From Blepharisma stoltei ATCC 30299 (taxonomy: Eukaryota > Protista > Ciliophora), in assembly GCA_965603825.1 (NCBI GenBank), contig CBFDEM010000038.1:124001-188000 (forward strand): a stretch of DNA of 64,000 nt. The letters run 5' to 3'. The notes beneath the pieces are model-generated. The model did no database searches, was not told the DNA's origin, and saw nothing but the letters and a program-made list of their open reading frames with translations. Position numbers and translations under genes: made by a program. This document shows positions 1 to 64,000 of the stretch, piece by piece. Every line of letters starts with the position of its first letter. The first letter of the stretch is position 1.

Positions 1-3000
1 TAGTCAAAATATGTTTTTCGAATCTGTTAAGAAAAGGAGCATCTTGTTTTTTTACATCTTCTGGACTTATTAGTGTAATTACATGAAAATTAGGATGCAC
101 TAGACACTTTGGATTAAAATTATCTCCAAGAGAAATTTTGCAATATTTTCGTTGATAATTTTCTGATCCATGGATTGAAAAGCTCTGATTAAATAAATCG
201 TAAAGTGAGCTATAAATGTGGTCCATATCTTTCAGAACTATAGATACGCCTAATTCCATATAAATTATAATATCATTCAAAGACTCAAATCCATAACTAT
301 CTTGATTTATATCATCAGGCAAGCTACTTCCAACTATAATTCTCCTGTTTTTATTATCACTCAAATATTTATCTAAAATAAACATGGCTATATCTGGCTT
401 GCCAATAATCATCAAATACCTTGCATTTGGATCATTTAAGTTATCATTTAACAGTTCAAAAATTTTTGTATTTTTCTTAGGCAAATTTATTTTATGATAA
501 TCATAAAATAAGCTACACATAATAGATTCACCATAGCTTGTGCCTCCAAAATTTCTTTCAATTGCAGCTTTCACACAATTTGTTATAAACTCACTTGTAC
601 TATTTTCTTTATCAATTAGTTTTTCTGATACTCGTTTAATTAAATGATAAAAGTCTCTCAAGCCATAAAAATCAGCAATTTCTGTTTCTTGGGTTTGTGT
701 TTTTAAGCTTGTATATGCCTTAGCAAGCTTCTTAATTATATGGTCGTAAATTTTATTTTCAGTGTATGAATGATAAATATCCAATGCAGTCAGCACCAAG
801 TCATCCTCACATGGATCAGGCCTAGCTAGATATAAAGCTCTATTCATTTTAGAGGCATCTAACCTTCAATTAGAAATCCCGATAAATCCAACTTTAATGT
901 TTTCTTTTTCAAGATATTTGTGAAGAACTTTTAAAGGGTTATATCTTGATAGTTCAGCTAAGCCAATTTCATCAAATACAATCACAGGGAGAACCTCGTG
1001 CCCTATTTTTGGATGTTTTCCAGCTTTTTCAAAAACCTTTATAATTCCTCCAGATTTGCAAGACTCAGAGCCTTGAAAATGCACCATCACTAGCTCTGGC
1101 AAAGTCCTAAAATAATGGTCATTTGATGTTTTACCTCTGAGATTAGAAAATATTAATTCTATCGATAAAGATTTGCTGCTTCCAGGCTTTCCACATATAA
1201 AAACAGGTATTTTATTAACAATACAAGGAATAGCAGCAAAAATGTTTTCTTTTAAAGCATTATTTAAAGCTGTTCCTTTTGGCAATTCCATTCTTTCTAT
1301 ATAGTCATTTTTTTCTAGCTCTATTATTTCCTTAATTTTTAATACACTTATAAAGGGGCTGCTTATAGAATCAGAAATTTTGCGTATAAAACGCTCTCGA
1401 TCTAATTCGGATGCAATTCTTAAGTAATAGCAATGAGAAAAAGAAAGGATTCCCGCTGAAAGATCAGTGTCTTGATTCGCATTAATATATTTTTCATTGA
1501 CTTTAGATTTTGGTGGCAAGTTTAAGTGATCAGAGATAGACTTTTCAAACCATAAATATAAATCAATAAATCTTGATACATCTCTTAAGCTAACACTGCT
1601 GACATCTTCCTCTTCTTGGAAATACTTGTGAGCTATACATATCATATCAGTAAAAACTTCTTTATACTGTGAATTTATGCGGTCAAGCATATTATTAACA
1701 TATTTTCTTACATCTTCATGAGTGAGCGTTCCAAAGTCCCACACATAGTCTATCATGGTTTCAGGGAGCGGTTTTACGAGATGAACCAGCTTACTTTCAT
1801 TCTGCGTTCTTTTTACTTTTTTGATACCAATATTTTGCTGCATTCCTTTTTTTGAAGAAACTCTATAAGGATTACACGCTCCTAGAAACGCAATATTTGA
1901 AGGCAAAGGGTTTCCATCAAGAGTTCTTTCACACATAATTTCACAAATCATTCCAATAGAATCAGTTGTATTGAATTCATCGAAAAACACTCACAATTTT
2001 TCATCTGGGCCGATTTTTTGGGCTTTTTCTGTTATTTTTTTCATTTTGTTTCGTATATCTTCTGATGTGGTGCCTGCATGAATACTAATTTTTGAGTAAA
2101 GCCTTGATGATTCGTCTTTAGTTTCTTCTTCAATTGACGAAGAGCTATGCAAACTGCTTCTAAGAGGCTCTTTTTTGGGCTTTCCTAGCACATTTTCAAC
2201 AAGAAATTGTATCAATGATGTTTTTCCACACCCAGTTTCGCCCATAATAATAACTGGAAGGCCTGAGTAGACTCTAAGATAAATAAGATTCATTTTTAAG
2301 AAATTATCAGGAGTCATTACATATTCGCCATCTCCATACGTTTTTTCCAGTCTTACATTATATCTATTATAATTATTCAATATTTCTAGCAGCTGATAAC
2401 GATTCATTGATGCGTAGTCATCAATTTCAAAATTTTTTCACTGTTCTTTATTTTTGCGTTTTCTTATAAAAATATTTTGTTTTGCTGCTAATTTTTGTAG
2501 AGAAATTAATTCTTTGAAATTTTCTGGAACACAATCTCGATTTCTATATATAGGAATAAAAGACCCATCTTTAAGGAAAATTAGGTGAAAATGGTTTGAT
2601 GATTCTCATTTGATATTATTTTGGTATTTTAAGGCTAAAGAAGAAATTTCATTTGCGTCATCAATTTGGTTCATTAAAATTTTTTCTGAGGACTTTTCTT
2701 GGATTTCTTTAATATTTGATATACATTTAGTTGTGAATTCTTTAGTTGAGCTTAATAAAGACTCAAAGACCATTGTTCGAAAATAGGAGAGTTTTTCTGC
2801 TATATTAGAAAGTCCCAAGTATGATAAATTTTCCTGTATATCTTTTATGATGTCAGGAGAAAATGGACTTCTTTCGAAATTAAGGAGCAGCCAATTTAAT
2901 ATTGATATGAAAATATTCAGTTGCGTATATGTCACACTTTTTTTATCATATTGTTCTTCTATAAAATAATTTTTTATTAAATAAATCAAATGATCCTTCT

Positions 3001-6000
3001 GCAAAATTATTTTATTTTCTATGGCTTTCTTATCGTCAATTAAATGATTCTCATATAAATTCAAATAATTACCCACAACTTGTATAGGATCATCAATTAT
3101 TTGGGGGACTATTAAACGCTCTATATCAAAATAATCAAGATGGCAAGAAGGAACAAAACTTAAATAATCTATAGACTTTAAAAGATTGTCCTGAAAACTA
3201 TTTGCTACTTCAATTAAAATAGGAATCCCTGCATCTAGCACAGAAATACTTTCAGATGTGCTTAAAGTTCTGAAAAGGCAGATATTGATTAAAATTTCGT
3301 TTAATAGAGAAGGGTTGCTTGTATAGCTAATATTTAAAAGCAAAACTGAGTTCCCAGTGACAGTGTTCAACTTCGAAATCATTTTGCATAACTCTGCATA
3401 ATTAATATCACCACCAATAGGAAAAGTGATTAAATTTGACCCTTTCTGTCTTTCCTCCTCTTTTATCATTACTGATTTTCCAAGTCCTGCAAAAGATGAA
3501 GTTATTACTCGGCTTTGATTTTCTATTTCACTTATCTTTATCTTTATTTTTTCATCACTTAAAATTTTATTCGAGCTGAATCTATTTACCTTTGGGACTT
3601 TTAAATATATTAAATACTGCAGTAAGTAGCATTTTGGGTTTGCTGTAATTATTCCGAGCCCTGATTTTATTGGCGATAAGCCGTATAACTCATTGAAAAG
3701 TAATTTAAAATTTATTTGATTTTCTAAAGAGAGATTTTCACAGTTTATTAGGCAGTAGATATTGCAAGAAGGGTCTTTAAAGTATCTATATAGAAAGGAT
3801 TTAAGTTCTCTTCAATAAGTGCAGCTTTTACAAAATAAGACTTGAGAGGCACTAGGAAAAGAGAGCTTATAGTATTCATAAATAGAAAAAATCCCATTGA
3901 GATATTTTGTTGTGTCAAGAATGATGATTTCGCCTTGGAAGGCTAAAATTTCTGGGTTTGGAGGAATGCCATTTAAATTAGGGATTTCGTTCAGAACAAT
4001 TCCTAATTTCATTAATCTCTCTTCTGGTAGCCCATCTTTAATGTATTGTACTGAAAGTTCTGTCTGTTTCCCCATAAACTTTAATAAGCTTATTGCCTCG
4101 TTTTTTGATACACAGGATGAGTCAATAATATAATTTTCTAAAGTCCAAAACTGGTTTCCACTCAAAAATGTTAACCAAAAACACTCCTTATAGGAATTGC
4201 TCAAATTTTTCTCCCAAGATTTAAATAGCCGCTGTATTTCCTTTTTTAATTGGATTACGGCTTCATAGTCTCCATCACAACAGCTAAATTCTTCATTAAG
4301 CTTATCCTCCAATTTTGGATAGCCACTTTGATATAAATCATTCATACAGTTGATAATTTTATTTATTAAGTTGATATAATTCACAAAAACATCAAAATAT
4401 TGTAATCCTCCATCATTATGCGTGCATGAGGACTGATAGGTGTGCATTATCAACTGTGCTCGATTTTTAAGTTCATTAATATCTGATATATCAAACTGCT
4501 TTTTCGCATTCTCAGAATATACTAAATCAATGAGATATTCATTATTTTCAAATTTCAGTTTAAAGCTTGATTTTTTCACAATTCCAAAAATTTGTTTCTT
4601 TTTAGCTTCTTCTTTGCAATTTATTTCAATATGCAACTTTGTTATAGCATTGAGTTGTGCAGCACATGAGCAAAGCTGACTAGGGACAGATTTAAAATCT
4701 TTTCCATTATCACAATTTGATGCAAATAATTGACTGAGCTGAGCAAAATTAGACAAAGAATCCTTTATATCTCTGATACAATATCATAAGTTTTCTAAAT
4801 CTAATATGGTCTGCATGCTAACAAACTCAATTTCATAGTCATTTATGCCTTCTTTCATATCCTTTATTTCACCTTCTCTTAAGCTTAACAAGAAGAGCAC
4901 AAGCTCTTTTGATTTCGCTATTTCTTGAAGTGAAGCGGCTAATGAATTTTTTTGCTCTTTCGACAAATTTTGAAACAGTTCATGGATTTTGGCTGATTCG
5001 TTTAAAAATTCATAAATGCAATAATTGTAAAGATTTGATGATAATTTAATGTAGTCAGAGCATATTTTCAAAACATTAATATCTGCTTCTCCTGTAATTT
5101 CTTTGAGACCAATTATTCCATGACATGCGTTTAACAAAGTATCATTCTCTTGATATCTCTCCAAAAATTCTCTAAAACGAGCTATCTTATCAAAAGCAAA
5201 GAGACCTTCATTCTTCATAAGGCTGGCAATGATTTCTATCTCTTTGTCAACATCTTGTATTTTAGAAAATATTTTTATGAATTCTCCCAATGGATAATTA
5301 GCACTAGCATCAAGAAACAATTTAATCAAGTTTTGAATCATTTTATCATATGAATTTCTACAGCCTTCAATTATTTTGTGAATGTCCAATTTGGGTGAAC
5401 TTGATGTTGTTAATAATATTTTGCATTCGGGCAGATAATAATTATTAAATATATATGAGTCAATTGCAAGCCCAATTTCACATGATATATCTACTATCAT
5501 TTTAATTTGTTGTGGAAATTCAAATTTAGCCAATTTAATTTCTAAAAATTTTTTCATTAAATCTTTATGTTCTTTCTCTATAGCTTCATAGTCTACCATA
5601 ATATCTTGAAAATGGCAAATAAATCTATTGAAAGAATTTAAACTGTTTTCGATTTCATTTTTTTTTTCTATAGCTTCTTCAATTGCCATAGAAAAATTTA
5701 GCTTTTCTTTATCTAAATTATTAAATGAAATTTCTAATAGATTTATCATGTCTGATCTCTGTTGTTTAAGCTGATTTTTGATAGTATCGATTTCAGATAA
5801 AGTAATATCTTTATTATATATTTTCTCTCCTATTTTGGATATTGTGCTTATAAGCAACTTTGGATGTTTAAATGATGTTAATTTTTTGTTTGAGTTGAAT
5901 ATTCAGCCCCATCATTTTTTCTTTTGAGGTTCAGTAAATAAAGCATTTTTAATATATTGCTCTGAATACTCATATACAATAAGAGAGAGTTCTCTCTCTA

Positions 6001-7969
6001 TAAGGGTGCTCAGAGTTTTATTTTTTTCATTTTTTTCATGAAGTTTAGAAAATTTTTTAAGTATTTTTTCGACTTTATCATTTTCTGAGATTTCTTTACC
6101 CAAAAGCAGTTCCTTCTCGTTTTTTAATTCTATTTCAATATAAGCCTCATTTAAAATTTCATTTTGGCAATTATCGATATTTACCACACAGCTCAGAAAT
6201 TCTTTCTTTATGTTTTTGCATCTTAATAAAAGACGCTCTACAAAAATAAAGCAGAGCCTTTCTAAATTTTTTTGGTTTTCAATCGAAAGAGCTTCACTTT
6301 TAAAATTGGAGATAATATCCTCAACTTTTTGATGATTAGCAATAATATTATTTGACCATTTTTCAAAAAATGAGTCAACAACAGAGATTTTGAAATTAAA
6401 AGTATTGCACACTATTGAAAATTCAATTTTGTCTTCATATATAAGTGTTTCAGAAAGTTCAATGGCGGAATAGTAGTCAGAATAAAAAACATCATAATAA
6501 TTTTTGAATATTTGTTCGTAGCAATGAAGCCTGATCTTTATTTTTTCAGTGCTTTGTTTTAAAATGTTTCATATCATTGCTCTTGCCTTATTGTTATACA
6601 TTAAGAGCTTAAATTCTTGGTCAAGGCTGCAAAGTACTCTAAAAAATTCAACGATATTATCCAAGCTTGATATATATTTTTCGCAATATTCTTCTACTAA
6701 AGTATCAATATCCTTAATTGATTTATTTTTAGCCAATTCATTAGTCTCTTTCAAACAAACTAATTGCAGGCTTCTAAAAAATTCATCACAGCTTAAACCT
6801 TGACTAACTATTTTTTTGAATATGCAGATTCATCTCTTTAAATTGAAAGAATTTATTTTGCTAATAATAAAATTTTTTTGTTCAATATTTAAAGGAATTT
6901 TAAGTTCATCCAAATCTTTTAAAAAGTGTTCTAAGATTTCAAATTTCGAATCATCACCCATATTGTAATCAAAAACATTTCAGATTTTCCTATCTTCTTT
7001 CATCTTAAATGCCATTAAATGGGCTAATCCTTTTAAGAAATGAGGATCCGATTCTAAATTTTGAAATTGGTCAGTGTTTTCTAATAAAACTTGAGACTTG
7101 CTGAAATTGACATCTGGGATCATTGAATGAGTGATGCATGATATCAAAGAGACAAGAGCATGGAGCTTCTCTATAGACAGTTGAGGATATGATGAAATAA
7201 ATTCTTCCAATATTTCAAGGAAAATTTTTGCATTATCATAATCAGTAATATCAAATCCATATTTCGCTTTAAATTGCTTAATAAGCATTGGAATAGTTTT
7301 CTCCCAATTGAGATTTTTTAATAAATAGTCTGCGTAAATTGATAGCTGCTTGAATGAACCACTTACAGATTCACCATCAGGTCTAACAGCCCCTAACGAA
7401 TATATGGTAACTATATTAACATCAAACAAGAAATTATTTTGAAACTCCAAATTAACGCCTCTGCATTGACCCCCACTTTCTCAGTTCTCTTTAATTTTAT
7501 CTAAAGATTTATCATAAAACATGAGCTTAACTTGAATGCATCCATTCCACCCTTTATTAAGTTGAATAGGCATTTCAAAAATTTTAATATTTTGGTCAAA
7601 TTTTTTACAATATCCTTCTAATATTTTGAACTTTTGAAATTTAATTGGGTAGCTGTCGCTTCCAATTATTGCAAGCTGAAGAGAATTATTTTCACGCTCT
7701 TGAGGAGTGAGCTTGTATAAGGCATAAATAGTGCAAATGTTTGCTGAAGTATCTTCGCAGTCGCTGAACTTATCCTTGGGTTGCTCTTCAGTAATGCTTT
7801 TTATTTTCTTTTCAGGATGGCATGGCTGATCTGTCAGTTCTGCTATAGGTGAAATTATGTTTCTCAATTTATAATTTTCATCAGAACGAGATTCTTCAGG
7901 TATTAGATCCTCAGCCTTTCCCTCCTCTTTTTCGCAAAACGCTAGCTCTTTTGCTTCTTCAGCACTCAT
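1..7969 (-). CDS. RNF213: RNF213/mysterin-like giant AAA+ ATPase, copy A (5' part; runs off the left edge, >2650 aa)
   Basis: All minus-strand ORF pieces from ATG 7969 to base 1 are in one frame, and the gaps I translated contain only TGA (=Trp). RNF213-type motifs: TSSFAGLGKS, PVIIMGETGCGKT, W-VFFDEFNTT, LGACNPYR, SLRDVSRF, CGKPGSSKSLS, VFDEIGLAE, GFIGISN-W-RLDASKMNR, FYGLRDFY, PFLNRFEKH. Confidence 0.9.
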
Positions 7970-8064
7970 ATTTTTATAATAGGCATTTTCTCTCTGTTAA
8001 TTTTAGGATTCTACATTTTTGTAAAGGTAAATGGAGAATTAAATACGCACTAAAGTTTTATTAA
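7967..8064 (-). promoter_or_regulatory. Upstream motifs shared with the RNF213-like copy B promoter
   Basis: Plus-strand GGATTCTACAT at 8006-8016 and ACTAAAGTTTTATTAA at 8049-8064 recur at 52862-52872 and 52877-52892 (ACTAAAGCTTTATTAA). The start contexts are GCCTATTATAAAAATATG (A) and GCCTTTATATAAAATATG (B). Confidence 0.5.
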
Positions 8065-9195: not shown

Positions 9196-9217
9196 TCTGA
9201 ATAGGCAAATTAGGAGT

Positions 9218-13300: not shown

Positions 13301-13577
13301 TATCACACTTATTGAATCATCATTCAATAAAGTCAATCTTGAAATACAAATCGGAACATTTTTTGACAAGAGTTGGGTACCTTTTTACATTCCAAGCAAA
13401 AAGACAGCTTTATGGCCAGTGACAAAATCGGTTCTTTTGTATCAATCAAATAAAGAAAGAGGAGAATTTTTTATGTACCGAAACCAAATTCTTAGAAAGA
13501 TAAAAGATTTTAAAATCCTTAGTGAAGAAGAGGTGAATAGTATAGGAAAAATAGATATGAAGCAATTTCTTAATTAA
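10389..13577 (+). CDS. Putative mitochondrial-targeted helical-repeat protein with RAP-like C-terminus, copy 1 (1062 aa)
   Basis: One open frame with TGA=Trp, ending TAA at 13575-13577. The N-terminus MLRLRFFAKGFSRSFS is basic and acid-free like a presequence. The body is Leu/Ile-rich and helical. The C-terminus WVPFYIPSKKTALWPV...RGEFFMYRNQILRKIKDFKILSEEE resembles a RAP/FASTK-type domain. The gene model is solid; the product call is inference. Confidence 0.7.
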
Positions 13578-13613
13578 ATTGAATTATTCAATAATAATTT
13601 AGCTGCAAATCAT

Positions 13614-17823: not shown

Positions 17824-17880
17824 ATAAAATAAAGTAATGAACAAATTTTTTCTTGCAGCTTTATATTTTCAATTCTATAG

Positions 17881-34900: not shown

Positions 34901-35085
34901 ATTTGAAGTGTGTATGCAAGAATTGAATGAGAAGTTTTGGACACGTCTATATCGTTTATAAATGACTCTAAACTTTTAGCACTTGCAAGTTTTAGATCTA
35001 TCCGAGCTTTTCCTATGTTGTAGTGATTTGAAAATGTTGAAAACGATCGAAAGAATCCTTTGGCAAAAAACCTAGGCCTCAGCAT
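31903..35085 (-). CDS. Putative mitochondrial-targeted helical-repeat/RAP-like protein, copy 4 (1060 aa)
   Basis: Inverted near-identical copy of 18001-21183 with the same length, ORF pieces in one frame, and a TAA stop. Confidence 0.7.
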
Positions 35086-48100: not shown

Positions 48101-51100
48101 ACCAAAATATTTTCGGACGAGCATAAAGTCCTGAAAAGGCAAATATTGATTAAAATTTCATTTAAAAGAGCTGGGTTACTTGTGTAGCTAAGGTTTAAAT
48201 GCAAAATGCAGCTCTCAGGGACGAAACTTATCTTTGAAATCATTTCACATACTTCTGAATAATTAATGTCACCGCCAATAGGAAAAGTAACTAGATTCAG
48301 AGAATTCGTCATTGCTTGATATCTCATATGAGTTGTTTTTCCAAGTCCTGCGTGAGAGGAAGTTATCACATAACTCTTTAAATCAATATTTTTGATTAAT
48401 TTTGTTATATCTTCATCATGCAAAAATTGATTTGTACTGAATCTGGCTACTTTTGGAACAGTTAAGGATTTAAAATATTGAGATAAGTAACACTTTGAGT
48501 TTGCTGTAATTATAGCTAACCCTGATTTTATATGTCCTGATCCTAAAAGCTCATTAAAAAGAGTTTTAAATTTAATTTGATTTTCCAAGGAAAGATTTTC
48601 ACAGTTAATAAGTGAGTAAAAATTATCATAAGGATCTTTAAAATATCGGTATAAAAAAGCTTTTAGCTCTCTCCAATAGGTAGAACTCTTGCAAAATAAA
48701 ACCTGTGATGCTTCAGGGAAAAAACCGGTATAGCATTTATAAATAGAAAAAATTCCATTGAGGTATTTATTTGTTGATAGAAAAATAATTTTGTCTTGAG
48801 AATTCAATTTTTCACCTAAGATATAAGTGTTCCTTTCAAGGTTTCCAGTCTTTTTTAGAATTTCTCCTAATTTAACTAGTCTATCTCCTGGCATTCCATC
48901 TTTAATATATTCTTGCCGATAACGAATTTCGCTTTGTTTTCCCATAAATCTTAATATATTTTTAGCTTCTGACATTTTTTCACAATTTGGATCAATAATA
49001 TAATCTTCAATTGTCCAAAACTGTTTTCCACATAAAAATGTCAGTCAATAGCATTTAGAATAGGCGTCGCTTAAATCAATTTCCCAGACTTTAAATAAAT
49101 CCAAAACCTCATCTTCATATTCCTTTACAGTATCATATTTTCCATCATTGCATTGAAATTCCCTACCTATTGTTTTTTCTAAATCAGGGTAGCCATTCTG
49201 GTGTAAATCATTCATGCAAATAATGATACTATTAATAGAATTGACATAATCTACGAAAACAGGAAAATACTTAAGATTTTCATCTTCTGGGTCGCCGAAG
49301 GAGTGAGAAGTGTGCATTATCAGCTGAGCTCTGCTTTTAAGCTCACTAAGTGTTGCTATATCAAATACTTTTTGGCTACTTGGATATCGCAAATGTATAT
49401 CAAATTTATCATTTTCAAATTTAATGATAAAAATTGAATTTTTTGAAATTTCTGATATATGCTTCTTTTTGGCTTCTTCTTTACAGTTTACTTCTGTGTG
49501 CAGTTCTGTTATAGCACGAAGATTTGGGGAGCATATTTGGAGCTGCTGAGGGACTTCCATAAATTTTTTCCCATCATCTCTGTTTAATTCAAATAAATTG
49601 CATAAGTTAAAAAAATTTGAGCAAGATCTTTTAATATCTCCAATGCAGTATCATAAGTTTTCTAAATCAGAAATAGTTTTTGTGTCTACAAATTCATTTT
49701 CAAAGTTACTCACGCCTACTCTTATTTGATCTATCTCGTCTTTTCTTAAATCCAGCAAAAAGAGCACTAATTCTTTTGATTTTCCTATTTCTTGAAGCGT
49801 GGAAATTATACAATCCTTACTTTGTCTTGAAAGACTTCTATCGAACAACTCATGAACTCTTTCTGAAATATTTAAATATTCCCCAATATTTGAGTTCTCA
49901 AGTTCTGATGAAAATTCAATATATTTAGAGCATGCTTCTAAAGCATTTCTATCAGCCTCTACTGCAATTTCTTTCAGTTTCATTAATCCATGGCATGCTT
50001 TCATAAGAGTTTCGTGCTCTTGGTAATTATGTAAGCATTTTATAAGAATATTTTTATTTTCTTCATCTAATGGAACAAGAAGACTAAGAAGCATAATTTC
50101 ATCTTCAATACTCCTTAAATTAGAAAATAGCTTGACAATTTCTTTCATAGGATAAGCATTAGTATCTCTAAATAATTCAGTTAAATTATTGATCATTTTC
50201 TGATGGGCATCTTCACATGTTGATACTATAATTTTAATTGAAGAGGACGGCAATAGTAAAGATTTGTACTTGGCGAGATAATAATTATTGAATATAAATG
50301 AGTCAATTGCTGGACCAATTTTTCATGAGACTCCAATAATTAATATCATCTCGTTTGGAAATGAAAAGCTAGCAAGCTGAGTATTTGTATATTCCACTTT
50401 AAAAGCATTGCATGCATTTTCTATATTTTCATATTCTTCGATTATATTTTGGAAATGATTAGTAAATTTAGCAAAAGATTCAAATTCTTTCTCTATTAAA
50501 TTTCTTTTTGTTATAATATTTTCTATGATAAATGAAAAGTCTTGATCTCTTCTAATAAAAAATTTAAAAGATTTTTCTAACAAATTTATCATAGCAGCTC
50601 TCTGGCTTGCTGTTTGGATTTTAATAATATCAATTTGGTGTAATTCAATATTTTCTTCAAGCAGCTTATTTCCTATTTCAGATAACTTACGTATTAGGAA
50701 CTGCGAATATATTAATGGCTCATAGTACTCATAAGAGCTCAAAATAGAGCTTCATATAATTTGCTTTTCAGGTTTTTCAAATAAAGCAGTATTTAATTCG
50801 GATTCTGTATATTCAAATTCTGTAGAGGAGAGTTGATTATCTATAAGAGTGCTAAGAATTTTATTTGTCGGATATTTCATGTGGCGCTTGAAAAATTTTT
50901 CCAGTACTATATACTTTTGATGGCTAACAGAAATCTTATTATCCATAATTTTTTTATTTTCATACTCCAATTCTGCTTTTATATAAACTACATTTAATAA
51001 ATCATTTTTAGAGTCATCGATATATCTTGCACAGTCTAAAAATTCGATTTTTCTTTTTTCGCATATTGATAAGAGCTTTTCTATCAAGACTTCACAAATA

Positions 51101-52845
51101 GTACCTAAATTTTCTTTGTCCTTGATCAAAAGAGTTTCTTTCGTAAATTGGTAAATAATCTCATTTAGTTTTAAGTCTTTCAGTGCAATGCTTTCTGCCC
51201 ATTTATCAAGAAGTTTAATCAAAGATGTTTTAAAGCCAAAAACATTTCAAATTTCATAAAGCGGAGTATTAAAATCTTTCATAAGCTTTTCAGATAGCAC
51301 AACTGCATAATCATAGTCAGAAAAAAATGGATCAGAGTACGTTTTGAATATCAAATGATATGATTTCATCCTAGCTTCTTTTTTCTCATTACTTTGGTTT
51401 ATAACATTTCATATAATGGATTTTATATTGTCTATATATGTTAAGCATTTAAATCGCTGATCCAAACCAGAAACAGCCTTAAAAAAATCAATGACATCGT
51501 TCATAGACACTATATAGGTCTGACAGAACTCAAAAAGCAATTTCCAGCATTCACTTATTTGGCCATCTGAATCATTTTTCAAAATAATATTTTGTAAATT
51601 ACTCAAAAAATCCTCACAATTCAAATTCCAATTTGAAAGTGCTAAATGTCTGAAAAGCTTTAAAAACTCTTCAAATTTATAAAGACTAATTTTTTCAAGA
51701 ATAAATGCTTTTTCTTCTAGTCTTAAATAAATTTTAAATAAACGCAAGTCTGCTAAAAAATGATTCAATATAGAAAATTTCAAAAAATCATTCAAATCGT
51801 AATTAAGAATGCTCATCCAATCTTCTCTTTTTTCTTTAATGTTGAATATCATTAAATGGACTAATCCTTCTAATGAATGAGGACTAGATGCCAAATTTTG
51901 CATGTTTTCTGAGTTTTGTAATAAGATAGAAGATTGACAGAAATTGACTTCTTTGTATTGTATCATTGAATGAGGAACACATGAAATCAAAGAGATCAAG
52001 ATATGCAGCTGATCTGCTGATAAAGAAGGGTTTTCGCTTATAAATTCTTCCACTATTCTAAAGAAGATGCTTGCGTTTTCTCAAAAAGCAGTTATCTCAA
52101 TTATATATTGTGCTCTAAATTGTTCGATAAGCATAGGAATTCTTCTCTCTCAGTCCTGATTTCTTAATAAAAAATCAGTATAAATTGATAACTCTTGCAG
52201 TGGATCAGTTTGAAATTTGTCAATAGGGATGGTTTTTGACTTCTTACTAGGCTTAGAAGCTACTTTTAAACCAAACAAGAAAATATGTTGGAAATGTATA
52301 TTCAATGTTCTTATAGGATCAATAATTGGCACGTTTACTTTTATATCTTTATTTTTTGGATCTTCTGAAAAAAGCGTTATCTTGATACGTCCATCCCACC
52401 TATCCCGAGGCAAAAAAGGGATAGTAAATATTTTTATATTTGGGCTAAATTTTTCATAATAGCCATTATGCATATAGAATTTTTCACAGTTTCCTTTATT
52501 TTCCCTTGTAAAAACTAGAGAACAATTTGTGAGATTTTTAGAGTTAAGATTGCACAAAGCATAGACATAGTTAAATTTTTGCAAAGAACTGATGCTTTCT
52601 GGAGAAATTTGATTAGGCAAGGAGTCTGTGCTATCTATATCTGTAAAAGATGATAAAATTTGATTTCTGCTTTTCATCTCAATTTCAGGATTACTTGAAG
52701 AACCTTGCGCCTGCAATGATTTGGAAAGAATTTCTTTTTTTGGATAATTAGAAGTACTTTTCGAGCTTTCTTCTTCCTTCTTTTCATAAGTTTCGTCTTT
52801 CTTTTTATCCTCTTCAGACTTCTCTCTTCCCTTTATGCTACTCAT
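39199..52845 (-). CDS. RNF213: RNF213/mysterin-like AAA+ ATPase / RZ-finger E3 ligase, copy B (complete, 4548 aa)
   Basis: 13647 nt in one frame from ATG 52845 to TAA 39199. Every break in the ORF track is TGA. Full RNF213 AAA motif set (HAGLGKT, GETGCGKT, FFDEFNTT, GKPGSSKS, FDEIGLAE) and an RZ finger at 41362-41478. Confidence 0.92.
41362..41478 (-). other. RZ-type zinc finger of copy B
   Basis: YKCSIDCDYIYPVTRCGGPTQQSLCPFCGRKIGGSRHKL matches the RNF213/ZNFX1 RZ pattern C-x3-[H/C]...CG.P....C..C...IGG..H. Confidence 0.85.
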
Positions 52846-52892
52846 ATTTTATATAAAGGCTGGATTCTACATATTTACTAAAGCTTTATTAA
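52843..52892 (-). promoter_or_regulatory. Upstream motifs shared with the RNF213-like copy A promoter
   Basis: See 7967-8064. Confidence 0.5.
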
Positions 52893-53938
52893 GATTTCTA
52901 TACTTTTAGAAATAGAGTTTTTATTTATAAATCAATTTTATTATTATGGTCACCACTCCCAAGTGAGCCATAAAATAAAGTATATAAAACTAATTTAAAG
53001 TATATATATTTTTGCTTTCTATTTGAGCTTTATTTTGCATTTCCAGCATAAATAAACTCAAATTATTTAACTTTATTTCAAAGTTCAGCATTCAGTTTAT
53101 TTGTGTCAGGCTTCTTAGCAGCAAAAATCATCGTGCATAAATAGTCTCTTATTGTGACTCTATTTAAAGATGCAGATAAAAGTGCATCTTATATTTATTA
53201 AATGCTAATTAAAACTGTGTATGCAAATATTAAATCTGGAAAGCTAAGTGCTACTTGCAAATTTTCTACCTCTTTGCAAAGCTATTATCTTATATTTAAT
53301 CTATAATCAAAGACCCTTCAGGATGGGATTCATCGGGCAGTAGGATTAAGTTTATTATGCTTGAATAAGATCAGATATATATTTAGCAGTAACATTTTTA
53401 TTTTATTATTAGCACTTATATTAAGAAATTTACTATCAAAATAATAGGATAGTTATAAATATTAAATAGGCTCCTTTATGAGAATTATGATAAAAGTGCA
53501 AATTTTCTGTAGTTTATCCAAAATTTATTAATAACGCATATATTTTTTTGAGTTGATTTATTTAATTATTTGCAAAAACTAACATAAGATCTTTATAAAA
53601 ATTGTTTTAATTTGCAAAGAAACACCAGGTTATAGCATAGCAAATTAAGAATTTAATAAAATGAGATTTCAATATATGTTGTCAAAATTTTAACACTCAA
53701 ACTCTTTCTCAGCTCTATTAATTATCATAGTCATCGTTTATTAGGCCATCTTGTAAAATTAGAAATATCGTGATAGTGAGCAATTCCTCCTTCCCTTCTT
53801 TCTACTTTTTAATAAAGAAAATATAAAGAGCCTGCATAATCAAGGAGTTTAAGATATATTAAACTTTATAGATTATTTTCTTAATTTTTAAAAGAAATTA
53901 ACCACTCAGCTTTCAATAAATTTCACTTAATATTATTG

Positions 53939-56900
53939 TTAGTCTCTACCTTCATCCCAATTAATAGACTCACGCTGTCTTGGCACTCTCCTTCTGGCTG
54001 CAGCAGCCTGCCTTATCTGTGAAGTCTCTGTTCTGTTAGTAATAATATTATGATTTTTTGCATATAGGAATTCATATGCTCTTAATGAGTGAGAAATTTC
54101 GATTAAACTTGGAAAAACTTCACTTAGGCTATCAATTTTCCATTGTTCGACACTGATGTCCCAAAAATCATATCTAGAAATATAAGTGCTAAGCTTATCA
54201 CCTGGCTGCAAATCAGCAGTAGAATTTCGGATTATAAACCTCATTAATGCGTCTTCTATTTGGAATTTAGTTGGATAAAACTGAGGACGCTGATCACACA
54301 TATTGATTAGTTCTACGATAGAAGCTTCTACAAGGTTAGCCTTATCAACTTGCTTGTATTCGGGGTTTATAAAACCTTTTGTGAATGGGAAATATCTTGC
54401 TTCAACGATCTGATATAAAGAAATGACATATTCGAGCTTAATTTCTGAAATCCTTGTACTGTCCTTCAAATGAGTTGAAATCCCTGAGGAATTCAACTCC
54501 TTGCAGAAATCTCGAATTGAATAGTCATTTTTTCCTTTGGAATAACGAAGATAGCAAATTACGTAGTTAAAAGATGTATAAATATCCTTAAGCGCCATAG
54601 AGTAATTCATTCGTGCACTCCTTTCTAGTTCACTGAAAAATAATTCAATGCTATGCAAACTTTCTGCACCTAATGCTTTTTGAGGGATAATTTCTTTAAT
54701 CTCTAATAAAAGCCCTGATTCTTCGCTTGTGGTGTTTAATAACTCAAATTGATATTGAATTAAATCAAGTCTAGTTGTATCAATCATTTTAGCCAAAAGC
54801 AGTTTTTTAGTCAACAATTTTTGCATCCTTTCAAAATCATATATAATTTCCCTACCTTTTCCATATATAGGATTGCTGAATGAGCAAACCCTGAGCAAAT
54901 CACTATCATCTATATGGAAAGATATTATATTTTGCTGTCTTAATTTTTGCAGCGGATATTCCGTTATCTTTTTTTGTTCTTCTCTATCCCTAGAGTTATT
55001 CGAAATAATTGAATTTATTTGTGAGAGATACTTATTTTGAATTTCAGCTAACTCATTTAAGGCAGCAGCCATGTACATTCCAGCGCCTAAAGCTTTATTA
55101 TCAACAAGAAAATAAGAAAGTGGGCTTTTAATATCAAAATTAATTGGACTCAAATCTTTGCAGCCATAGTGAAGATTATCAATTCCTTTAGCTTCCCATG
55201 CTTCAAGAAACTTTTTAAATAGAGGCTGGAGCTCTGAATGGTTATTTATGGCTTCACCAATGGTAATATTTAATGCATCACTTCGAAGAATTTTATGATT
55301 GTATATATCTAGCAATTTATTTGTGAATTCTATTATTGGATAGAGAGATTCTATTTTCTCGATTTCCTCAGAGTTTTCTAAATAAATACTAATCAATCTA
55401 AACTCCTTTGCTGATTGGTTCAATAAAAACTGATTTCGCATATTTTCCAGTGATGGTTTGTCTTTTGTTCTGAATAATTCTATATAGGGATAATTTTTAT
55501 CATTATTTAAGCTGATAATTTCATTTACATAGTCTTTAAAAGAATATTGGATTTCATAATGATTTCTAAGAAGTGTTGAATATTCCAAAATAGAATTTTG
55601 TGGGTTGAGATTTGGGATAATCAATTTATTTTCAAATTGTATTTCAAAAACATCTCTCATATTAGAAGAAAGCGGATCAAAATCGCACTCAGATAGCAGC
55701 TCGTCCAAATTTGATATTATCTTATACTCTCATAAATGGCCTGAATTTGAGCCACTTAACTCAAGTAATTTTTCATAGTCTAATTTTACAGATCTTCTTA
55801 AGCACCCATAGCCGGATTCTTGCAAGTGGGAAGGGTTTATTAATACTTCAAGAGTTGTGCTATCAATTGATCCTAATTGATTTAATGCAAAAATAACACT
55901 GCTTAAAACAAAATGCTGAGCGAGGTAGCTTGCTGGTTTTAGGTTTCTAACTGAGCTGATATCTCCTATTAGAGATCCAAAGAACTTTAAGCCTGCATCT
56001 GCTTCTCTACGATGTCTTATGACAGCATTCTTAATAAAATCATATGCTTCTCTATGATATAAATTTACATGCCCTTCTCTTTCTACCAGCTTATGACGTG
56101 TCCCTCCAATTTTTCTACCACAGAAAGGACACTCAGATTCCTGAGTTGGGCCTCCACATTTTGTTACAATATAAATATAATCACAATCGCTTGAACATTT
56201 GTAGGTGCTCCCTTTAGAATATTTTTTACTCCAAGTATCAGTTATAAAGGATTCGAAATTATCATAAATTTCTTGAGTATACTTATGCAATGGGTTAGGC
56301 TCTGCTCCAAAAATAAATCGGCTGTTAAATCTTTCAATTAAATTATCTATAGTTCCGTTTTCATTAAAGAAAAGAGAAGAAATTGGGTTTCTCCTTTGGC
56401 TATATGACAACGCAACTGTAAAAATCCCAAGAATTGTTAAAATTCTATGTAAATCTAATTCTGATGTATTTACTTCGAGTCTCAGGTCAGAATTAACTGG
56501 AAAATTATTGATATAGCAGAAAAATAGTTGATAAAATTCTTGACCTAAAGTAGTGCGAATTGCATCTTCTTTGAGATTAAACCAAATAATAATATTTTTG
56601 TTCATTTCTTTTTCTTTTGAATAAATTGAAAAGATTTCATTTAAAAACGCAATTCCTAAAGCGAGCTTTTGTTCAGGACTCTCAATTTCGTTAAGAATTC
56701 TATCATTTTCATTTTGGTCACCAACTTTATTCAAAATATTTCTTAGGCATTTTATGTTATTTTTATAGATTTCTGATATACGAGGAAAAACCAAAAATGA
56801 TTCTAAATTTAACTTCATTTGTGGCTGTTTTTCTTCATCAAGTTCTTTTATACGGTTAATTCATATCAGATTAGGATACTCTTGTATGAAAGTACTTAGA

Positions 56901-59900
56901 TCACATTTTGTAATCAATAATATTTTTTTAAGGCAATGCATTTTTAAAGTGTCGCCTATGTCTGACTCAGAAACAATTGTGCCTATATTATTAATTATTT
57001 CATTTTCTTTGTTAGAAATTATCATTTTTTTAGCAACCACAAAGCAATAAATATCGAGATAACTCTTTACCATAATCAAAGATACTAATTGTTTCACATT
57101 TGAGAAATTGATGTCTCTGTTTTTTGCAGTCCTCAAAAAATAATTAAAAATCTTTTCCTCCTCGCAGAGCTTTCTCCTATAATATTCATCTTCTTGATCA
57201 TCTTGATCTCTATCTTTTACCAATGTTTCCAAGTTATCACTTAAAATTATACCGAATTTGCTACAAATTCTTTGGTTGGATAAAGCTCTCTCTATTTCTT
57301 CTAAATAATTGTTGCTAATTAGCTCAAAATCAGCATTTGTATCATCTAATATATTCTTTTTTAGTTTTTCTATAGAATTTTTAATTTTTGATCTACTTGT
57401 AATTATATTCATAATCTTTGTAGAGTATTGCCAAAATTCTTCATTTTCAAGTTCTTCAGCGATATTTGCTATATAGTGTGGTTTGTGGTTTACCAAAAGC
57501 TTAAGAAAAGAGCCCATGAATTTATAATACTCTGATGAGTTTCTATATCTGTTTTCAACAATTCTAAAAACTGTATTTGCAAACTCATCTGTGAATATCT
57601 CTGAAGTTCTTTCTATATTTATCTCTGGTGCTTGAAAAGAAAGATTTAACAGAATTTCCCATTTTCCATTATTTTTTGCAATTAATTTGCTAAATAACAC
57701 CCAAAATTCAAGAAAGTCGAGACTATCAATAGAAGCACGCTCCTTTAATTCTATTTCAGTAAGTAAATAATACATTTTTTCCGCTTTGTTTGAATATTCC
57801 AAAACATTGAATTCGTGGGAATTGAATAAATGAGGCTGCATGTTGCCTATCAGCATCTTATAGACTGAATTTAGAGCAGTTTTCCAAATTTTTTGGTTTT
57901 CATCTTTACCAGCCTCAAACGAGTCTATATCAATTAAAATATTTTCCAAAACGGGAGTCACGCTCACAGTTAACTCTGGTAGAACATCAATTGCATTGCA
58001 TAATAAAACGCCAAGCTCTGCGATTTGCATGAATGAAATTAATTTTTCCTCAAATAATTCATCATCATGGAAAACTATATTAAGCAAAATTAAAATCATT
58101 TTTTTATGGTCTAAACTCAACAAATTTTCTTTAAGATAAATGGAGACGAGGTCATTGAAATACAGATCTTGAAGCAGGAAATGTTCTCCATTGAAATCTA
58201 TGGCTTTTTTATATATAGATTTTTTATTATATTTTTCATCAAATTTCTCAAAGGAAGTTTGAATAGGGTTTTTATTCATTTCAGAAATTTTATATAAGTT
58301 AAAAGCATCTTTAACAACTTTGTAGTCCATTCTTGAAAATGGAAAATAAAGTTCATATTCGTATTTTAGCAGATTTCCTTGGTTTAATCTTTGCAGTCCA
58401 ATATTATTGTCTACTGTCAAGCTCTTAAAAATATCAAGCCAGATCTGTTTTCTAAAATTATTAAATTGGGCGTAATAACTGCCAAAAGGCTGAACGTAGC
58501 TTAAAAGAGCACTTTTTTCCTCGAGGACATAAATAATCAGCTGTAGAGCGCTTTCTATTTCCATTCCAAGAACCTCTGAAATGGCCTCATGCAGGTTCGC
58601 AGAGTCATCAATAATCTTAGAGTTTAAAAAGATCTCTTCTTTCCAATCTTTCTTTATATTTATTATTTGCAGATATTTCCATATTTTTTCCTTAAAATAG
58701 CTAGAAATTTCAGGATCACTCCCAATAGTCTTAATTAAATCATTAAGATAGCTGCTAAATTTGTCTTCATTTTCTGCAGTGATCTCAATTTTAAACGAAA
58801 GCACACATTTCTCTGCCAAAAGTTCTATTTTCTTCTCAAAATTAAAAATATTATCGGCAAGAATTAATGATTTTGTATTTTTTGAGATTATTTCATCTGT
58901 AGCTTCAAATGAATCAGGATATAAACGATCAAACATTTTCATTTTCCATGATTCAAACAGCATAATATTTGAGTTGTATTTTATATTTCTCCTTATACGA
59001 ATCAATATACAGAATTTCTTATTTGATTTAGAATTTTCTGAATTTAATTTATCAATCAAAAATTTCACAAGTGGTAGATGGTTGCACTCTTCTCCAAAAT
59101 CAACCTCTAAAATGAATACCTTTTGGTCCTTATTTTGGTAAAATGCATTTAATTCTTTAGTAAGATCCTGCTTTGAGTTGAAACTAATCATTTCCTTTAT
59201 CACAATTTTTTCATCGTCATTTGTATTAAAAAATTTTCCTGAAATTCTTTTGTCGTAAGTAAACGCAATCAATTTATCAAATTCGCTTGCATCTTCTATC
59301 ATTGACTTTATGGTATCTTGGAAGTTAATACAATGCAATTCTTTCCAGGCATTTTTTATATTTTCTTTAAGATCTGGATCTATTGAAATTAATTCTAGTA
59401 ATATCAAAATATCAGAAGGGGCAATTTCTAGCAGAATATTTTTGCATTTTTCTAAAGTTTCTTTCTTTTTTCCTTGGCTATTGAAAAGTATAAGTAGTGC
59501 CAAGGTTTCTCTGTTGTAAATAGGAAATAGATGATTTTTGGTGAAACTTACTATTTCTTGCTCATTGATCATAAAAAATGAATTAATCCAATCTTCAAGC
59601 TTTTCTAATAAATTTGTTTGCTTTTTATTAAGAAGCGTATCGATTGATAAATAATGCTTTTCAAACCTATTGAGGAAAGGAGCATCTGCCTTTTCAACAT
59701 CATCTGGGCTTATCAGCGTAATGGCATGGAATTTTGGATGCACGTAGCAACTGGGATTAAAATTAGCCCCAAGTGAAATTTTACAATATTTTCGCTCACA
59801 GTTTTCTACTCCTTGGATTGCAAAGCTTTGATTAAATAAATCATAAAGCGAGCTATAAATATGGTTCATGTCTTTCAAAATGATAGATATCCCTAGTTCC

Positions 59901-62900
59901 ATATAAATTATAATATCATTTAAGCACTCAAAGCCATAATTATCTTGGCTTACATCATTCGCAAGGTTGCTTCCTATAATTATTCTCCTATCATTATGCT
60001 GGTCCAAGTATTTATCCAGAATAAAAGTAGCTATGTCAGGCTTGCCAATGAGCATCAAATATCTTGCATTAGGATCTTCTAAATTATCCTTTATTAAGTC
60101 AAGGGTTCTTGTATTTAATTCTGGCAAATTTATCTTGTAGTATTCATTAAATAAAGTGCACATAATAGATGTACCATAGCGTGTGCCTCCAAAGTTTCTT
60201 TCAATAGCGATTTTCACATATTTGAGAATATCTTCACTGGTGCTTGGGCTTTGCTTTGCAAATTTTTCTGAAACATTCTTAATTAAATGATAAAAGTCTC
60301 TCAAGCCATAAAAATTTGCATTTATTGTTTCTTGGATTTGCTGTTTTAAGCCCATATATGACTTAGCAAGATTTATGATTACAGGCACATAAATTTCATT
60401 ATCAGTATATGAATGATAAATGCTTAGTGCAGTAAACTTTAAATCTTTTTCATCAGGGTCCGGTCTGGCTAAATACAAAGCTCTGTTCATTTTAGAAGCG
60501 TCTAGCCGCCAATTAGATATTCCGATAAATCCAATATTAATGTTTTCTTTTTCAAGATAACTATGAAGCACCTTCAAAGGGTTGTGCTTCGATAGTTCAG
60601 CTAAGCCTATTTCATCAAACACAATTACAGGAAGCACCTCATGCCCTACTTTTGGATATCTTCCTGCTTTTTCAAACACTTCTATGATTCCTTCAGATTT
60701 GCAAGTTTCAGAGCCTTGAAAATGAACCATTGCAAGCTCTGGCAAAGTTCTAAAATAAGGATCATTTGATTTTTTACCTCTGAGATTAGCAAATATTAAT
60801 TGCACTGATAACGATTTGCTGCTTCCTGGCTTCCCACATATAAAAACAGGTATTTTATTAACAACGCATGGGATAATAGTAAAAATATTTTCTCTTAAAG
60901 CATTATTCAAAGCTGTGCCCTTAGGTAAATCCATCCTTGATATATAATCATTTTGCTCTGTTTCGATTATTTCAGTAATTTTTTGTACGTTTATCAAATC
61001 AGGCTTACAAAGAGAATCAGAAATTTTGTGTAAAAAAGATTGTCGATCATCATCAGATGCAATTCTCAGATAGTAGCAATGAGCAAATGCAAGAATTCCA
61101 GCTGATATCTCAATTTCCTTATCATTACTATAATATTTTTCCATTTTTGGGAATTTCCTAATCAATTCTCTTTTTCGATCACAGATTGACTCTCTGAACC
61201 ATAAAAACAAATCAATAAACCTTGAAACATCCCTTAAGCTAACACTGCTGACGTCCTCTGTTTCTTGAAAATGCTTATGTGCTACACATATTATATCAAC
61301 GAATAGCTCTTTATAGAGCGATTGAATTTGGTTTAGCATAGTCCATATATAAACTCTTGCATCTTCGTGTGTGAGAGTGCCAAAGTCCCATACATAATCT
61401 ATCATTGTTTCAGGGAGAGGCTTTACTATATGAACAAGTTTGTCTTCATTTTGGCTTCTCCTTGATTTCTGTATGCCAATATTTTGCTGCATACCTTTTT
61501 TAGAAGAAACTCTATATGGGTTGCATGCTCCAAGAAAAGCCAGATTTGAAGGCAGTGGGTTCCCATCAAGGGTTCTTTCGCACATAATTTCACAAATCAT
61601 GCCGATAGAGTCAGTTGTATTGAATTCGTCAAAAAATACCCATAATTTCTCCTCAATGCTTTCAGCTCTGGCTATTAACTCTGCCATTTTTTCTCTTATG
61701 TCCTTAGATGTTGTTCCTGCATGAATATTGATTTTTGCAAATTGAGACTTTTCATGCTCAGCTTCTTCCCCTTTGATTTCCTCATTTATTATAGGATTAT
61801 ATAAACAGTCTTGTGTGAGTCTTTTTCTCTTCGGCTTTCCTAATACTTTTTGAACTAGAAACTGTATTAAAGATGTTTTTCCGCACCCAGTTTCGCCCAT
61901 AATGATGACTGGAAGACCTGACTGGACTCTAAGATAAATAAGATTCATTTTCAAGAAATTGTCAGGAGTCATAACATATTCATCTTCTGCATACTCTTTA
62001 TCGAGCTCTACAGTCTTGTTATATGTATTCAACTTATTAAGTAGCTGAACATGGGTCATCTTTGAGTAGTCTTCAATATCATATTTCCCTAATTTTATAA
62101 TTTTAGCCAGCTTTTTGCCACTAAGATTGTATCTACTTTGTAAAAAAATCAATTTTTTGAAATTTTTTGGGACATGAACTGGATTTCGATAGATAGGTAT
62201 AAAAGACCCATCTTCTAGTAAAATAAGATGGAAATGGTTAGAAGACTCTCATTTGATATTATTTTGATATTTTGTGATCAAGGAAGAGATTTCATTGGTT
62301 TCATCAATTTGATTCCTAGAAATTTGTTCTGAAGATCTTTCTTGTATTTCTCTAACATTTGTTAGATATTTAGTGGTGAATTCCTTAGTTGAGTTTAAAA
62401 GGCAATCAAGAATCATTGTTCGCATATTTGAGTACTCTTTGGCAACGTCTCCAAGTGAATTTTTTTCTAAATCTCTTTTAAATTTTTTAATCATTTCAGG
62501 CGAAAATGGACTTCTTTTGAAGTTTATTAGTAGTCTATTTAATATTGACATAAAAATATGCAATTGCGTATAAGTTATCTGCTCTATGCCAACTTGAAGC
62601 GTAATAAAGTGTTTTTGTATTAAATCTATCATATCTCCTTTTGTCAAATCATCGATTATTTCTACATCATCCTCATCATCGATTGTTTTATTCTCATAAA
62701 CTTTTAAATATTTCCCCACAATTTGCATCGACTCATCGACGATTAGATGGTTTATATTAAATCTATCAAGATGCCGAGGAGTAACAAAGCTTAAATATTC
62801 TACAGATCTAAAAAGACTATTTCCATATGTATTTGCTATTTCAATCCAAATGGGATATTCTCTGTCTAAAACAAAAATATTTTCAGATGCACTTAAAGTC

Positions 62901-64000
62901 CTTAAAAGGCAAATATTGATTAAAATTTCGTTTAATAATGATGGGTTGCTTGTATAGCTGATATTTAAATGCAAAATAGTTCTTTCATAAGTGATATTGA
63001 GTTTCGAAAGCATTTTGCAAACTTCTGCATAATTAATATCCCCGCCGATTGGGAAGGTAATTAAATTAATGAGATCATTGGAAGCTTGATATTTTAGATT
63101 CTTTGTCTTCCCAAGCCCCGCACATGATGAAGTTATCACTCGAGTATTAGGGTCAATTGCAGTGATAAATTCATTTATTACCTCATCGTTTAAGAACTGA
63201 TTGGTGCTGAACCTGTTTACTTTTGGGACAGTTAAATCTTTAAAATACTGCAATAAATAGCATTTAGAGTTGGCTGTGATTATTGCGAGACCTGATTTTA
63301 TGTGTTCTAGGGTATATAATTCGTCAAAAAGAGCTTTGAATTTGGCTTGGTTGTCTTGGGAAAGATTTTCGCAGTTTATTAGTGAATAAATATTATAGCA
63401 AGGGTCTTTGAAGTATCTGTATAAGAAGGACTTTAACTCTCTTCAGTGTGTAGAGCTTTTGCAAAATAAAATTTGGGAAGCATTTGGAAAAGATCCCATA
63501 TAATATTTATAGATAGAAAAAATACCGTTGAGGTATTTAGTAGTGTCAAGAAGGATGATTTCACCTTGGTAAGTTGGAGATTTGGCGGATTGGTCAAGAA
63601 CAAACGACTGCTTATCAGAATTAGGAGTATTATCCAATACTTTGCCTAGATTTTCCAATCTTTCGCCTGGAGTTCCATCTGTAATAAGTTCTCTATAAGC
63701 AGAAATTGCAATACTTTTGCCCATAAATTTTAGGATATTCTGTGCTTCAATTCTTGAATCACAATTTGGGTTTAAAATATAATTTTCAATAGTCCAAAAT
63801 TGTTTTCCATTCAAAAATGTAAGACAAAAATGTTTAAGATACGAATGGCTTAAATCAATTTCCCACACTTTATATAAATCAGAAATTTCCTCTTCAAGTT
63901 GGCTCACATTTTCATAATTTCCATCATTGCAGCTAAATGAGACTCTAAGCTTGTCTTCGAGCACAGGGTAACCATTTTGATATAATTCATTCATGCAAGT
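53939..64000 (-). CDS. RNF213: RNF213/mysterin-like AAA+ ATPase / RZ-finger E3 ligase, copy C (3' part; starts beyond the right edge, >3350 aa)
   Basis: All pieces in one frame to TAA at 53939. Collinear with copy B through the AAA core, RZ finger (56087-56203) and C-terminus (WDEGRD vs WKKGRD). Confidence 0.92.
56087..56203 (-). other. RZ-type zinc finger of copy C
   Basis: YKCSSDCDYIYIVTKCGGPTQESECPFCGRKIGGTRHKL. Confidence 0.85.

Follow-up and report, generated by a model that had tools for sequence, protein, structure and literature searches.

Analysis of a 64,000-nucleotide (nt) window of the genome of the ciliate Blepharisma stoltei ATCC 30299 (contig CBFDEM010000038.1, here C38, positions 124,001 to 188,000) revealed three giant genes on the minus strand, paralogs A, B and C, which on the evidence of their sequences and modelled folds are intact genes of the RNF213 family. 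RNF213 combines, in one giant protein, a dynein-like AAA+ ATPase with an E3 ubiquitin ligase that works by RZ-finger transthiolation, and it has been studied nearly only in mammals, in connection with moyamoya disease and with immunity to bacteria, viruses and Toxoplasma. The genes were assigned to this family through four collinear anchors, namely the AAA3-AAA4 ATPase core, the fold of the helical region behind it, the RZ finger and the C-terminal domain. ATP-gated transthiolation by an E3 would be the most likely mechanism of the proteins, and the family identity and this mechanism, taken jointly, were given a probability of about 0.85. The positions of all features are collected in Table 1.

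Genetic code and extent of the giant frames

The window had a GC content of 30% and a low coding density. Under the standard code its longest open reading frame (ORF) reached only 1795 codons. When TAA and TAG alone were taken as stops, minus-strand frames opened at 2-7996 (2665 codons), 39202-52848 (4549 codons) and 53942-64000 (3353 codons). Among the 38 TGA codons in the paralog alignments, 16 stood opposite TGG-Trp and 12 opposite another TGA, so TGA is read as Trp in these genes, judging from the aligned codons. Flanks of 9 kb and 10 kb from the same contig were added to complete A and C, and each of the three genes then formed one uninterrupted full-length ORF. Full-length table-4 translations were used for the paralog comparison, the motif scans and the tree, and TGA-free pieces for the homology searches. 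A, B and C were collinear in pairwise comparison, with 54-68% identity; only 1.1 kb separates the neighbours B and C, and A lies 31 kb off with other genes between. BLASTP aligned paralog B collinearly to homologs of 4,400-5,200 amino acids (aa), from about residue 500 through the C-terminus. A first-pass annotation, made from the letters of the window, had described three same-strand paralogs with giant open frames in a ciliate using UGA as Trp. Both statements held: the frames were complete with the flanks (4557, 4548 and 4582 aa), and the TGA and TGG counts were joined by a 100% match between a further paralog, on contig C52, and a public Blepharisma stoltei protein (CAG9330731.1). A bacterial origin with code 4 or code 25, which the TGA sense codons and the 30% GC had brought into question, was rejected on account of this exact match, a LINE retroelement in the locus, the sparse coding and the eukaryotic homologs.

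Collinear anchors to RNF213

A 1795-aa piece of C containing the AAA3-AAA4 core was compared with the Protein Data Bank (PDB) by phmmer. It matched human and mouse RNF213 over 870 residues (E 1e-102 to 4e-102) and no other protein significantly, the runner-up being an ABC transporter at E=0.06. Past the core, phmmer against PDB with the RZ piece of B and with B residues 2981-3388 gave no match, and the link to RNF213 was made there only by profiles, for the RZ and C-terminal regions, and by a fold search. For the RZ-containing region, a profile of 31 homologs matched human RNF213 (E=2.5e-31), and a profile of the C-terminal domain likewise matched mouse RNF213 (Table 1). The stretch of 835 residues that links AAA4 to the RZ region in C was folded by AlphaFold2 (AF2) from a 20-sequence alignment, with a mean predicted local distance difference test score (pLDDT) of 83 and a predicted template modelling score (pTM) of 0.70. 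The 20-sequence profile of this region found no sequence match in PDB. In Foldseek, the top seven matches of the model were all RNF213 (E 1e-8 to 7e-7, query TM-score (TMq) 0.45-0.52), and the eighth had E=0.015. Residues 13-153 of the model formed an AAA fold that was closest to the dynein AAA large domain (Z-score 9.7) in a structure comparison covering chains up to 3,000 residues, and so without RNF213. The units of the AAA ring thus seen were AAA3-4 by sequence and one more AAA fold after AAA4 in the model.

ORFs of this kind could also belong to another AAA family, midasin/Rea1 or the dynein heavy chain, that merely has the P-loop in common. The Pfam matches were to the generic AAA, AAA_5 and AAA_7 (dynein-related) models, and the first domain of the folded region resembled the dynein AAA large domain. 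However, RNF213 was the single significant sequence match in PDB, at about 1e-102 over 870 residues, the RZ finger was followed by an RNF213-specific C-terminal domain in the correct order, and Foldseek returned only RNF213 for the helical region, which leaves the other families with next to no probability. With core, RZ, C-terminal and fold matches all to RNF213, a midasin or dynein identity was therefore rejected, in agreement with the first-pass annotation.

ATPase motifs, RZ finger and predicted mechanism

The Walker motifs of both central ATPase units were present in A, B, C and the two paralogs on contig C32. AAA3 carried the Walker A motif GETGCGKT and the Walker B motif FFDEFN, and AAA4 carried GKPG[SC]SK[ST] and FDEIG; in A, B and C these read GETGCGKT and GKPGSSKS for Walker A and FFDEFN and VFDEIG for Walker B. 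The RZ finger that had been proposed for each of A, B and C was recovered in all three above the cut-off of Pfam PF20173. Alignment to human RNF213 with 31 homologs gave the Blepharisma pattern Y-K-C-S-x-D-C-D-Y-I-Y-x(4)-C-G-G-P-x(5)-C-P-F-C-x(3)-I-G-G-x(2)-H, in which the four Zn-ligand positions are filled and the C-G-x-P nucleophile and the distal His are kept. In C (numbering of piece 55733-56860), the residues are C222, C226 (human H4509), the catalytic C235 (human C4516), C244, C247 and H256. The RZ finger of mouse RNF213, there named ZF2, binds zinc via C4451, H4455, C4471 and C4474; C4462 (human C4516) is the nucleophile that receives ubiquitin from the E2, and a conserved His, H4483, lies near it; docking of the E2 is the task of the C-terminal domain, and ATP binding gates the activity (10.1101/2021.05.10.443411). 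The Pfam RZ model matched five places genome-wide, each inside an RNF213-like gene, and no ZNFX1-type RZ gene was detected with it in the whole Blepharisma genome. In five of the six paralogs of the genome, ATPase sites, RZ-finger nucleophile and E2-docking domain are all retained, and there is no RING. The C52 paralog was the most divergent. The Pfam RZ model misses its RZ finger, in which the four zinc Cys are retained but the catalytic Cys is replaced by Asp and the conserved His by Lys. The AAA3 Walker A motif of this paralog is also a variant (GDTGCGKS), and the protein may be ligase-dead.

From the homology with mouse and human RNF213, the E3 module would be switched on when ATP binds at AAA3/AAA4 of the ring. 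A Cys-reactive, ubiquitin-charged E2 (E2~Ub) would then dock on the C-terminal domain, and ubiquitin would move to the conserved Cys of the RZ loop and from there to the substrate. The fast-diverging N-terminal arm most likely picks the target, and therefore the paralogs probably differ in their binding partners.

Copy number and duplication history

A six-frame search of the genome (41.46 Mb, 64 contigs) revealed six RNF213-like genes, all full-length and open: A, B and C on C38, two on C32 and one on C52. No additional copies were found on C38, so that the larger array which the first-pass annotation had considered, from genes running off the window, was not borne out. The C32 pair stands head to head with about 600 bp between the genes, which would have a divergent promoter region in common. 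The public model CAG9330731.1 matched the uninterrupted C52 ORF except for its start at the second Met.

A maximum-likelihood tree of the AAA3-AAA4 core was built from 72 rows (LG+G4, quick search), with support from the Shimodaira-Hasegawa-like approximate likelihood ratio test (SH-aLRT) only; the rows exclude unnamed homologs shorter than 3,800 aa and unnamed ones past the first 45. All six Blepharisma genes formed one clade (SH-aLRT 96), within which A, B and C formed a clade (support 100), as did the C32 pair (support 99). Unnamed ENA sequences and Stentor coeruleus joined the Blepharisma group in a larger clade (support 99), and the animal, fungal, streptophyte, amoebozoan and stramenopile sequences were placed outside it. 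By this tree the expansion is therefore lineage-specific and arose by duplication within the Blepharisma lineage. This was as proposed in the first-pass annotation, together with faster divergence of the N-termini: identity among A, B and C was 33-54% in the first ~900 residues and 70-77% in the AAA core, with 48-56% over B residues 3227-3519 and 58-73% in the RZ and C-terminal regions. Pairwise omega (dN/dS) was 0.10-0.40 in each 300-codon window, with the maximum (0.40) in the first 270 codons. Pairwise dS was 0.8-2.1, which is saturated, and pairwise dN/dS is thus uninformative on positive selection. Judged by these ratios, the genes are old duplicates retained under purifying selection along their whole length.

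Transcription

Four runs of one study held, as assembled contigs, 40-54% of the sampled words of window positions 50500-56400. The contigs covered C from 53911-54009 upward at a word depth of 10-105, with an edge about 30 nt beyond the stop codon at 53939-53941. Contig cover was thin over the 5' part of B (depth 2-5), and the intergenic segment 52864-53848 was nearly empty. Gene C is likely transcribed, because a genomic DNA library would not leave the intergenic gap, and gene B is probably transcribed at a lower level. No introns were seen across the 3' 2.4 kb of C under contig cover.

The long frames could instead be decaying or silent duplicates rather than working genes, as the locus is rich in recent duplications and gene fragments, holds a long interspersed nuclear element (LINE), and shows only thin contig cover over the 5' part of B. 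Such decay is very unlikely in view of the six paralog frames of about 13.7 kb each, which hold not a single TAA or TAG, the omega values of 0.1-0.4, the catalytic motifs, which are all intact, and the deep cover of C with its sharp edge close behind the stop codon.

Two peculiarities of the contigs were also seen. One contig in each of the runs X1 and X3 (run labels, distinct from the gene copies in Table 1) skips 66 nt in frame at window 54762-54829, within the C-terminal domain of C. The skip ends in AA..CC and not in the GT..AG of an intron, with long loose ends on either side, and may be an assembly chimera or come from a paralog. The contigs of run X2 over window 52585-56400 carry mismatches to the assembly at about 1-2% of positions and a 3-nt deletion at 52689-52691, and look like another allele or strain; those of the other runs match the assembly exactly.

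Lack of a detectable RING and other points against the assignment

Several observations weigh against the overall reading of the genes. The domain that gave the family its name is missing: no piece had a Pfam RING match, and no 60-residue window contained six or more Cys. In the RZ finger, the second Zn ligand is Cys and not the His of mammals, and the loop in front of the catalytic Cys exceeds the mammalian one by two residues. AAA1, AAA2 and the N-terminal arm were matched solely through collinear BLAST alignments to uncharacterised long homologs. For transcription, the RNA label of the four runs is a guess, and the contigs give no strand, transcript ends or true expression levels.

The RING was also sought by pattern. 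The canonical C3HC4 pattern occurred in none of A, B and C and in none of 242 collected homologs (0/242), by a regular expression run without a vertebrate positive control, and no Cys-rich RING-like element was present in C between 56864 and 59368. Mouse RNF213 with the RING deleted is still active (PMC7311170), and the absence of the RING is therefore no argument against E3 activity. The first-pass annotation had not remarked on this absence.

N-terminal arm and cellular role

The N-terminus consists of a Lys/Glu/Ser-rich disordered stretch followed by a conserved beta-rich block. An AF2 model of it from a shallow alignment had a mean pLDDT of 44.6, and Foldseek returned weak matches of this model to the carbohydrate-binding module (CBM) families CBM41, CBM20, CBM25 and CBM21 (E 8e-3 to 7e-2) among other beta sandwiches. 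Pfam gave no match here. Residues 93-161 of B may form a starch-binding-type CBM-like sandwich, as a lead only. Human RNF213 carries an N-terminal CBM20, and the N-terminus of primate RNF213 is positively selected (PMC11549300).

In the first-pass annotation, the paralogs were a candidate locus of cell-autonomous immunity, a diversified array against phagosome-escaping bacteria, endosymbionts or viruses. On this reading they would coat and ubiquitylate such invaders, with variable N-arms tracking the ligands of pathogens. This role is possible, though somewhat doubtful. The catalytic apparatus that mammalian RNF213 uses on bacteria is conserved, and the expansion is lineage-specific and partly tandem. 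Expansions of relatives also occur in Glomeromycotina fungi, rotifers and molluscs. Divergence is fastest in the N-terminal ~900 residues, with the top omega in the first 270 codons, which echoes primate RNF213 (PMC11549300), and the N-terminus gave a weak sign of a starch-binding-type domain. However, omega stayed below 1 throughout and dS was saturated, the CBM-like call was based on a model with pLDDT of about 66, and the neighbours are not defence-related (copies of the RAP-like and Arm-like genes, together with a LINE and a glutathione peroxidase gene). Among the papers covered by full-text search, none linked RNF213 to ciliates or other protists.

A tentative case of similar weight can be made for a housekeeping role at organelle surfaces that is older than immunity, such as lipid-droplet, membrane or metabolic ATP/AMP-sensing quality control, with paralogs subfunctionalised by compartment and not by pathogen. 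The occurrence of the family across eukaryotic supergroups suggests an ancient general function, the genes are under purifying selection over the full length, and their duplications are old (dS at least 1). In mammals, RNF213 has also been reported on lipid droplets, and adenine nucleotides gate it (10.1101/2021.05.10.443411). On the other hand, a single copy would be expected for a core role, and the six copies, with their divergent N-arms, are in keeping with a diversification of targets. The immune role and a general surface or metabolic quality-control role are equally compatible with the data. A wider and rather improbable proposal would make RNF213 an ancient eukaryotic machine of cell-autonomous defence. 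Its original form would have been RING-less (AAA ring, RZ finger, C-terminal domain and perhaps an N-terminal glycan-binding module), multiplied in a bacterivorous, symbiont-bearing ciliate with N-arms for different intracellular microbes, and the RING of vertebrates would be late.

Distribution and closest known systems

The family is widespread in public databases, with 4369 representatives at E<=0.001, of which 1143 reach E<=1e-30. Named homologs came from Stentor (SteCoe_9902), Tetrahymena malaccensis, Spumella, Mesostigma, Physarum, Glomeromycotina, rotifers, molluscs, cnidarians, a nemertean and amphioxus, and some of the public homologs are already labelled 'RNF213-like'. RNF213 has been described as conserved in vertebrates (PMC7311170). 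The first-pass annotation had expected that gene callers would shred these genes and that the family could easily be missed; this was not so for this genome, since the C52 paralog is public at full length and homologs occur across eukaryotes. The Blepharisma proteins are new, unnamed members of a family that, like the sequence of one paralog, is already public.

Like vertebrate RNF213 (mysterin; PDB 6TAX, 7OIK, 8S24 and 9JW1), the Blepharisma proteins are giant single chains (~4,550 aa against ~5,200) with a collinear AAA3-AAA4 core in which the Walker A and B motifs of both units are kept, a helical E3 module, an RZ finger that retains the Zn ligands, the catalytic Cys and the distal His, and a C-terminal E2-docking domain. 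They differ from it in being ~600 residues shorter, in having no RING found, in the Cys for His at the second Zn ligand and the two extra residues of the pre-catalytic loop, in an N-arm that has no detectable sequence similarity and for which CBM20 is only a weak model-based lead, and in numbering six paralogs instead of one or two. To our knowledge, the ciliate also has no interferon system, unlike the vertebrate hosts of RNF213.

Closer in architecture are the uncharacterised RNF213-like proteins of other eukaryotes (3,800-5,600 aa), which have the AAA core, RZ finger and C-terminal domain in common with the Blepharisma proteins, are all without a RING by pattern search, and are multi-copy in several lineages. 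The Blepharisma genes differ in forming a clade of their own, nearest to Stentor and unnamed ENA sequences, and their identity to the nearest non-Blepharisma protein was 47-49% in the core and ~29% overall. ZNFX1 has the RZ finger (PF20173) in common with them, but it is an SF1 helicase with NFX1-type fingers and without an AAA ring. Dynein heavy chain and midasin/Rea1 likewise have several AAA units per polypeptide, and the post-AAA4 unit superposes on the dynein AAA large domain, whereas the Blepharisma proteins have no stalk, microtubule-binding or MIDAS domain and their C-terminal half is the RNF213 E3 module.

Neighbouring genes

Segmental duplications of a unit of two genes, X plus Y, are clustered at window positions 9200-35200. 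The C-terminal 326 residues of X showed a RAP/FASTK-like organellar RNA-binding likeness from language-model features only, and Pfam found nothing. The frame of the LINE-like element was broken between the endonuclease and the reverse transcriptase.

Table 1. Features of the window and of the other RNF213-like genes. Positions are those of the window unless a contig is named; negative positions and those above 64000 lie in the flanks.
Feature	Position	Strand	Basis or remark
Paralog A	-5701..7996 (in-window part 1..7996, N-terminal 2665 codons)	minus	4557 aa from first Met; far end C38:118299
A RZ finger	C38:120432-120569, beyond the window	minus	PF20173 over cut-off
Paralog B	39202..52848	minus	complete; 4548 aa from first Met; stop codon 39199-39201
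B small all-beta domain, residues 93-161	52366..52572	minus	AF2 model, pLDDT 64-69 here
B AAA3 Walker A GETGCGKT	47089..47112	minus	motif scan; Pfam AAA_7, AAA_5 matches
B AAA3 Walker B WVFFDEFN	46873-46896	minus	motif scan
B AAA4 Walker A GKPGSSKS	46066..46089	minus	motif scan
B AAA4 Walker B VIVFDEIG	45859-45882	minus	motif scan
B RZ finger	41356..41490	minus	PF20173, E=6e-11; all Zn ligands, catalytic Cys, distal His
Paralog C	53942..67708 (in-window part 53942..64000, C-terminal 3353 codons)	minus	4582 aa; stop codon 53939-53941
C AAA3-AAA4 ATPase core	59369..61984	minus	aligns to human RNF213 residues 2431-3318 (tagged-chain numbering)
C remaining AAA unit(s), hinge, helical front of E3 module	56864..59368	minus	AF2 model and Foldseek
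C RZ finger	56081..56218	minus	PF20173, E=3.8e-13; profile alignment to human RNF213
C C-terminal domain (596 residues)	53942..55729	minus	profile of 39 homologs matches mouse RNF213 residues 4590-5142, E=4.5e-39
C32 pair, first gene	C32:469520-483511	minus	full-length ORF, 4627 aa
C32 pair, second gene	C32:484121-497752	plus	full-length ORF, 4544 aa
C52 paralog	C52:117252-130826		NCBI CAG9330731.1, 'unnamed protein product [Blepharisma stoltei]', 4515 aa, 100% identical
Gene X, copy X1	10389-13574	plus	1060 aa; X copies 76-95% identical
Gene X, copy X2	18001-21180	plus
Gene X, copy X3	31906-35085	minus
Gene Y, copy Y1	15382-16803	minus	~440-470 aa; weak Armadillo-repeat matches
Gene Y, copy Y2	22677-24008	minus	as Y1
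X fragments	25105-26353 and 27288-28323
Inverted repeat	17871-22109 vs 35214-30964; 22097-23476 vs 30274-28896		97%; 98.6%
LINE-like retroelement	35338-37353	minus	between X3 and paralog B
LINE endonuclease Exo_endo_phos_2	36691-37251	minus	E=3e-11
LINE reverse transcriptase RVT_1	35362-36168	minus	E=3e-24
Glutathione peroxidase gene, 186 aa	38037-38594	plus	GSHPx E=2e-36; no in-frame TGA

Implications for the family

The five RING-less Blepharisma paralogs with kept catalytic parts support the RZ finger as the ancestral catalytic site of the family, and suggest that the RING was added later in evolution. These genes are natural RING-less and shorter variants for structural and biochemical comparison, and they raise the testable question of whether the first role of the family was defence or general surface quality control.

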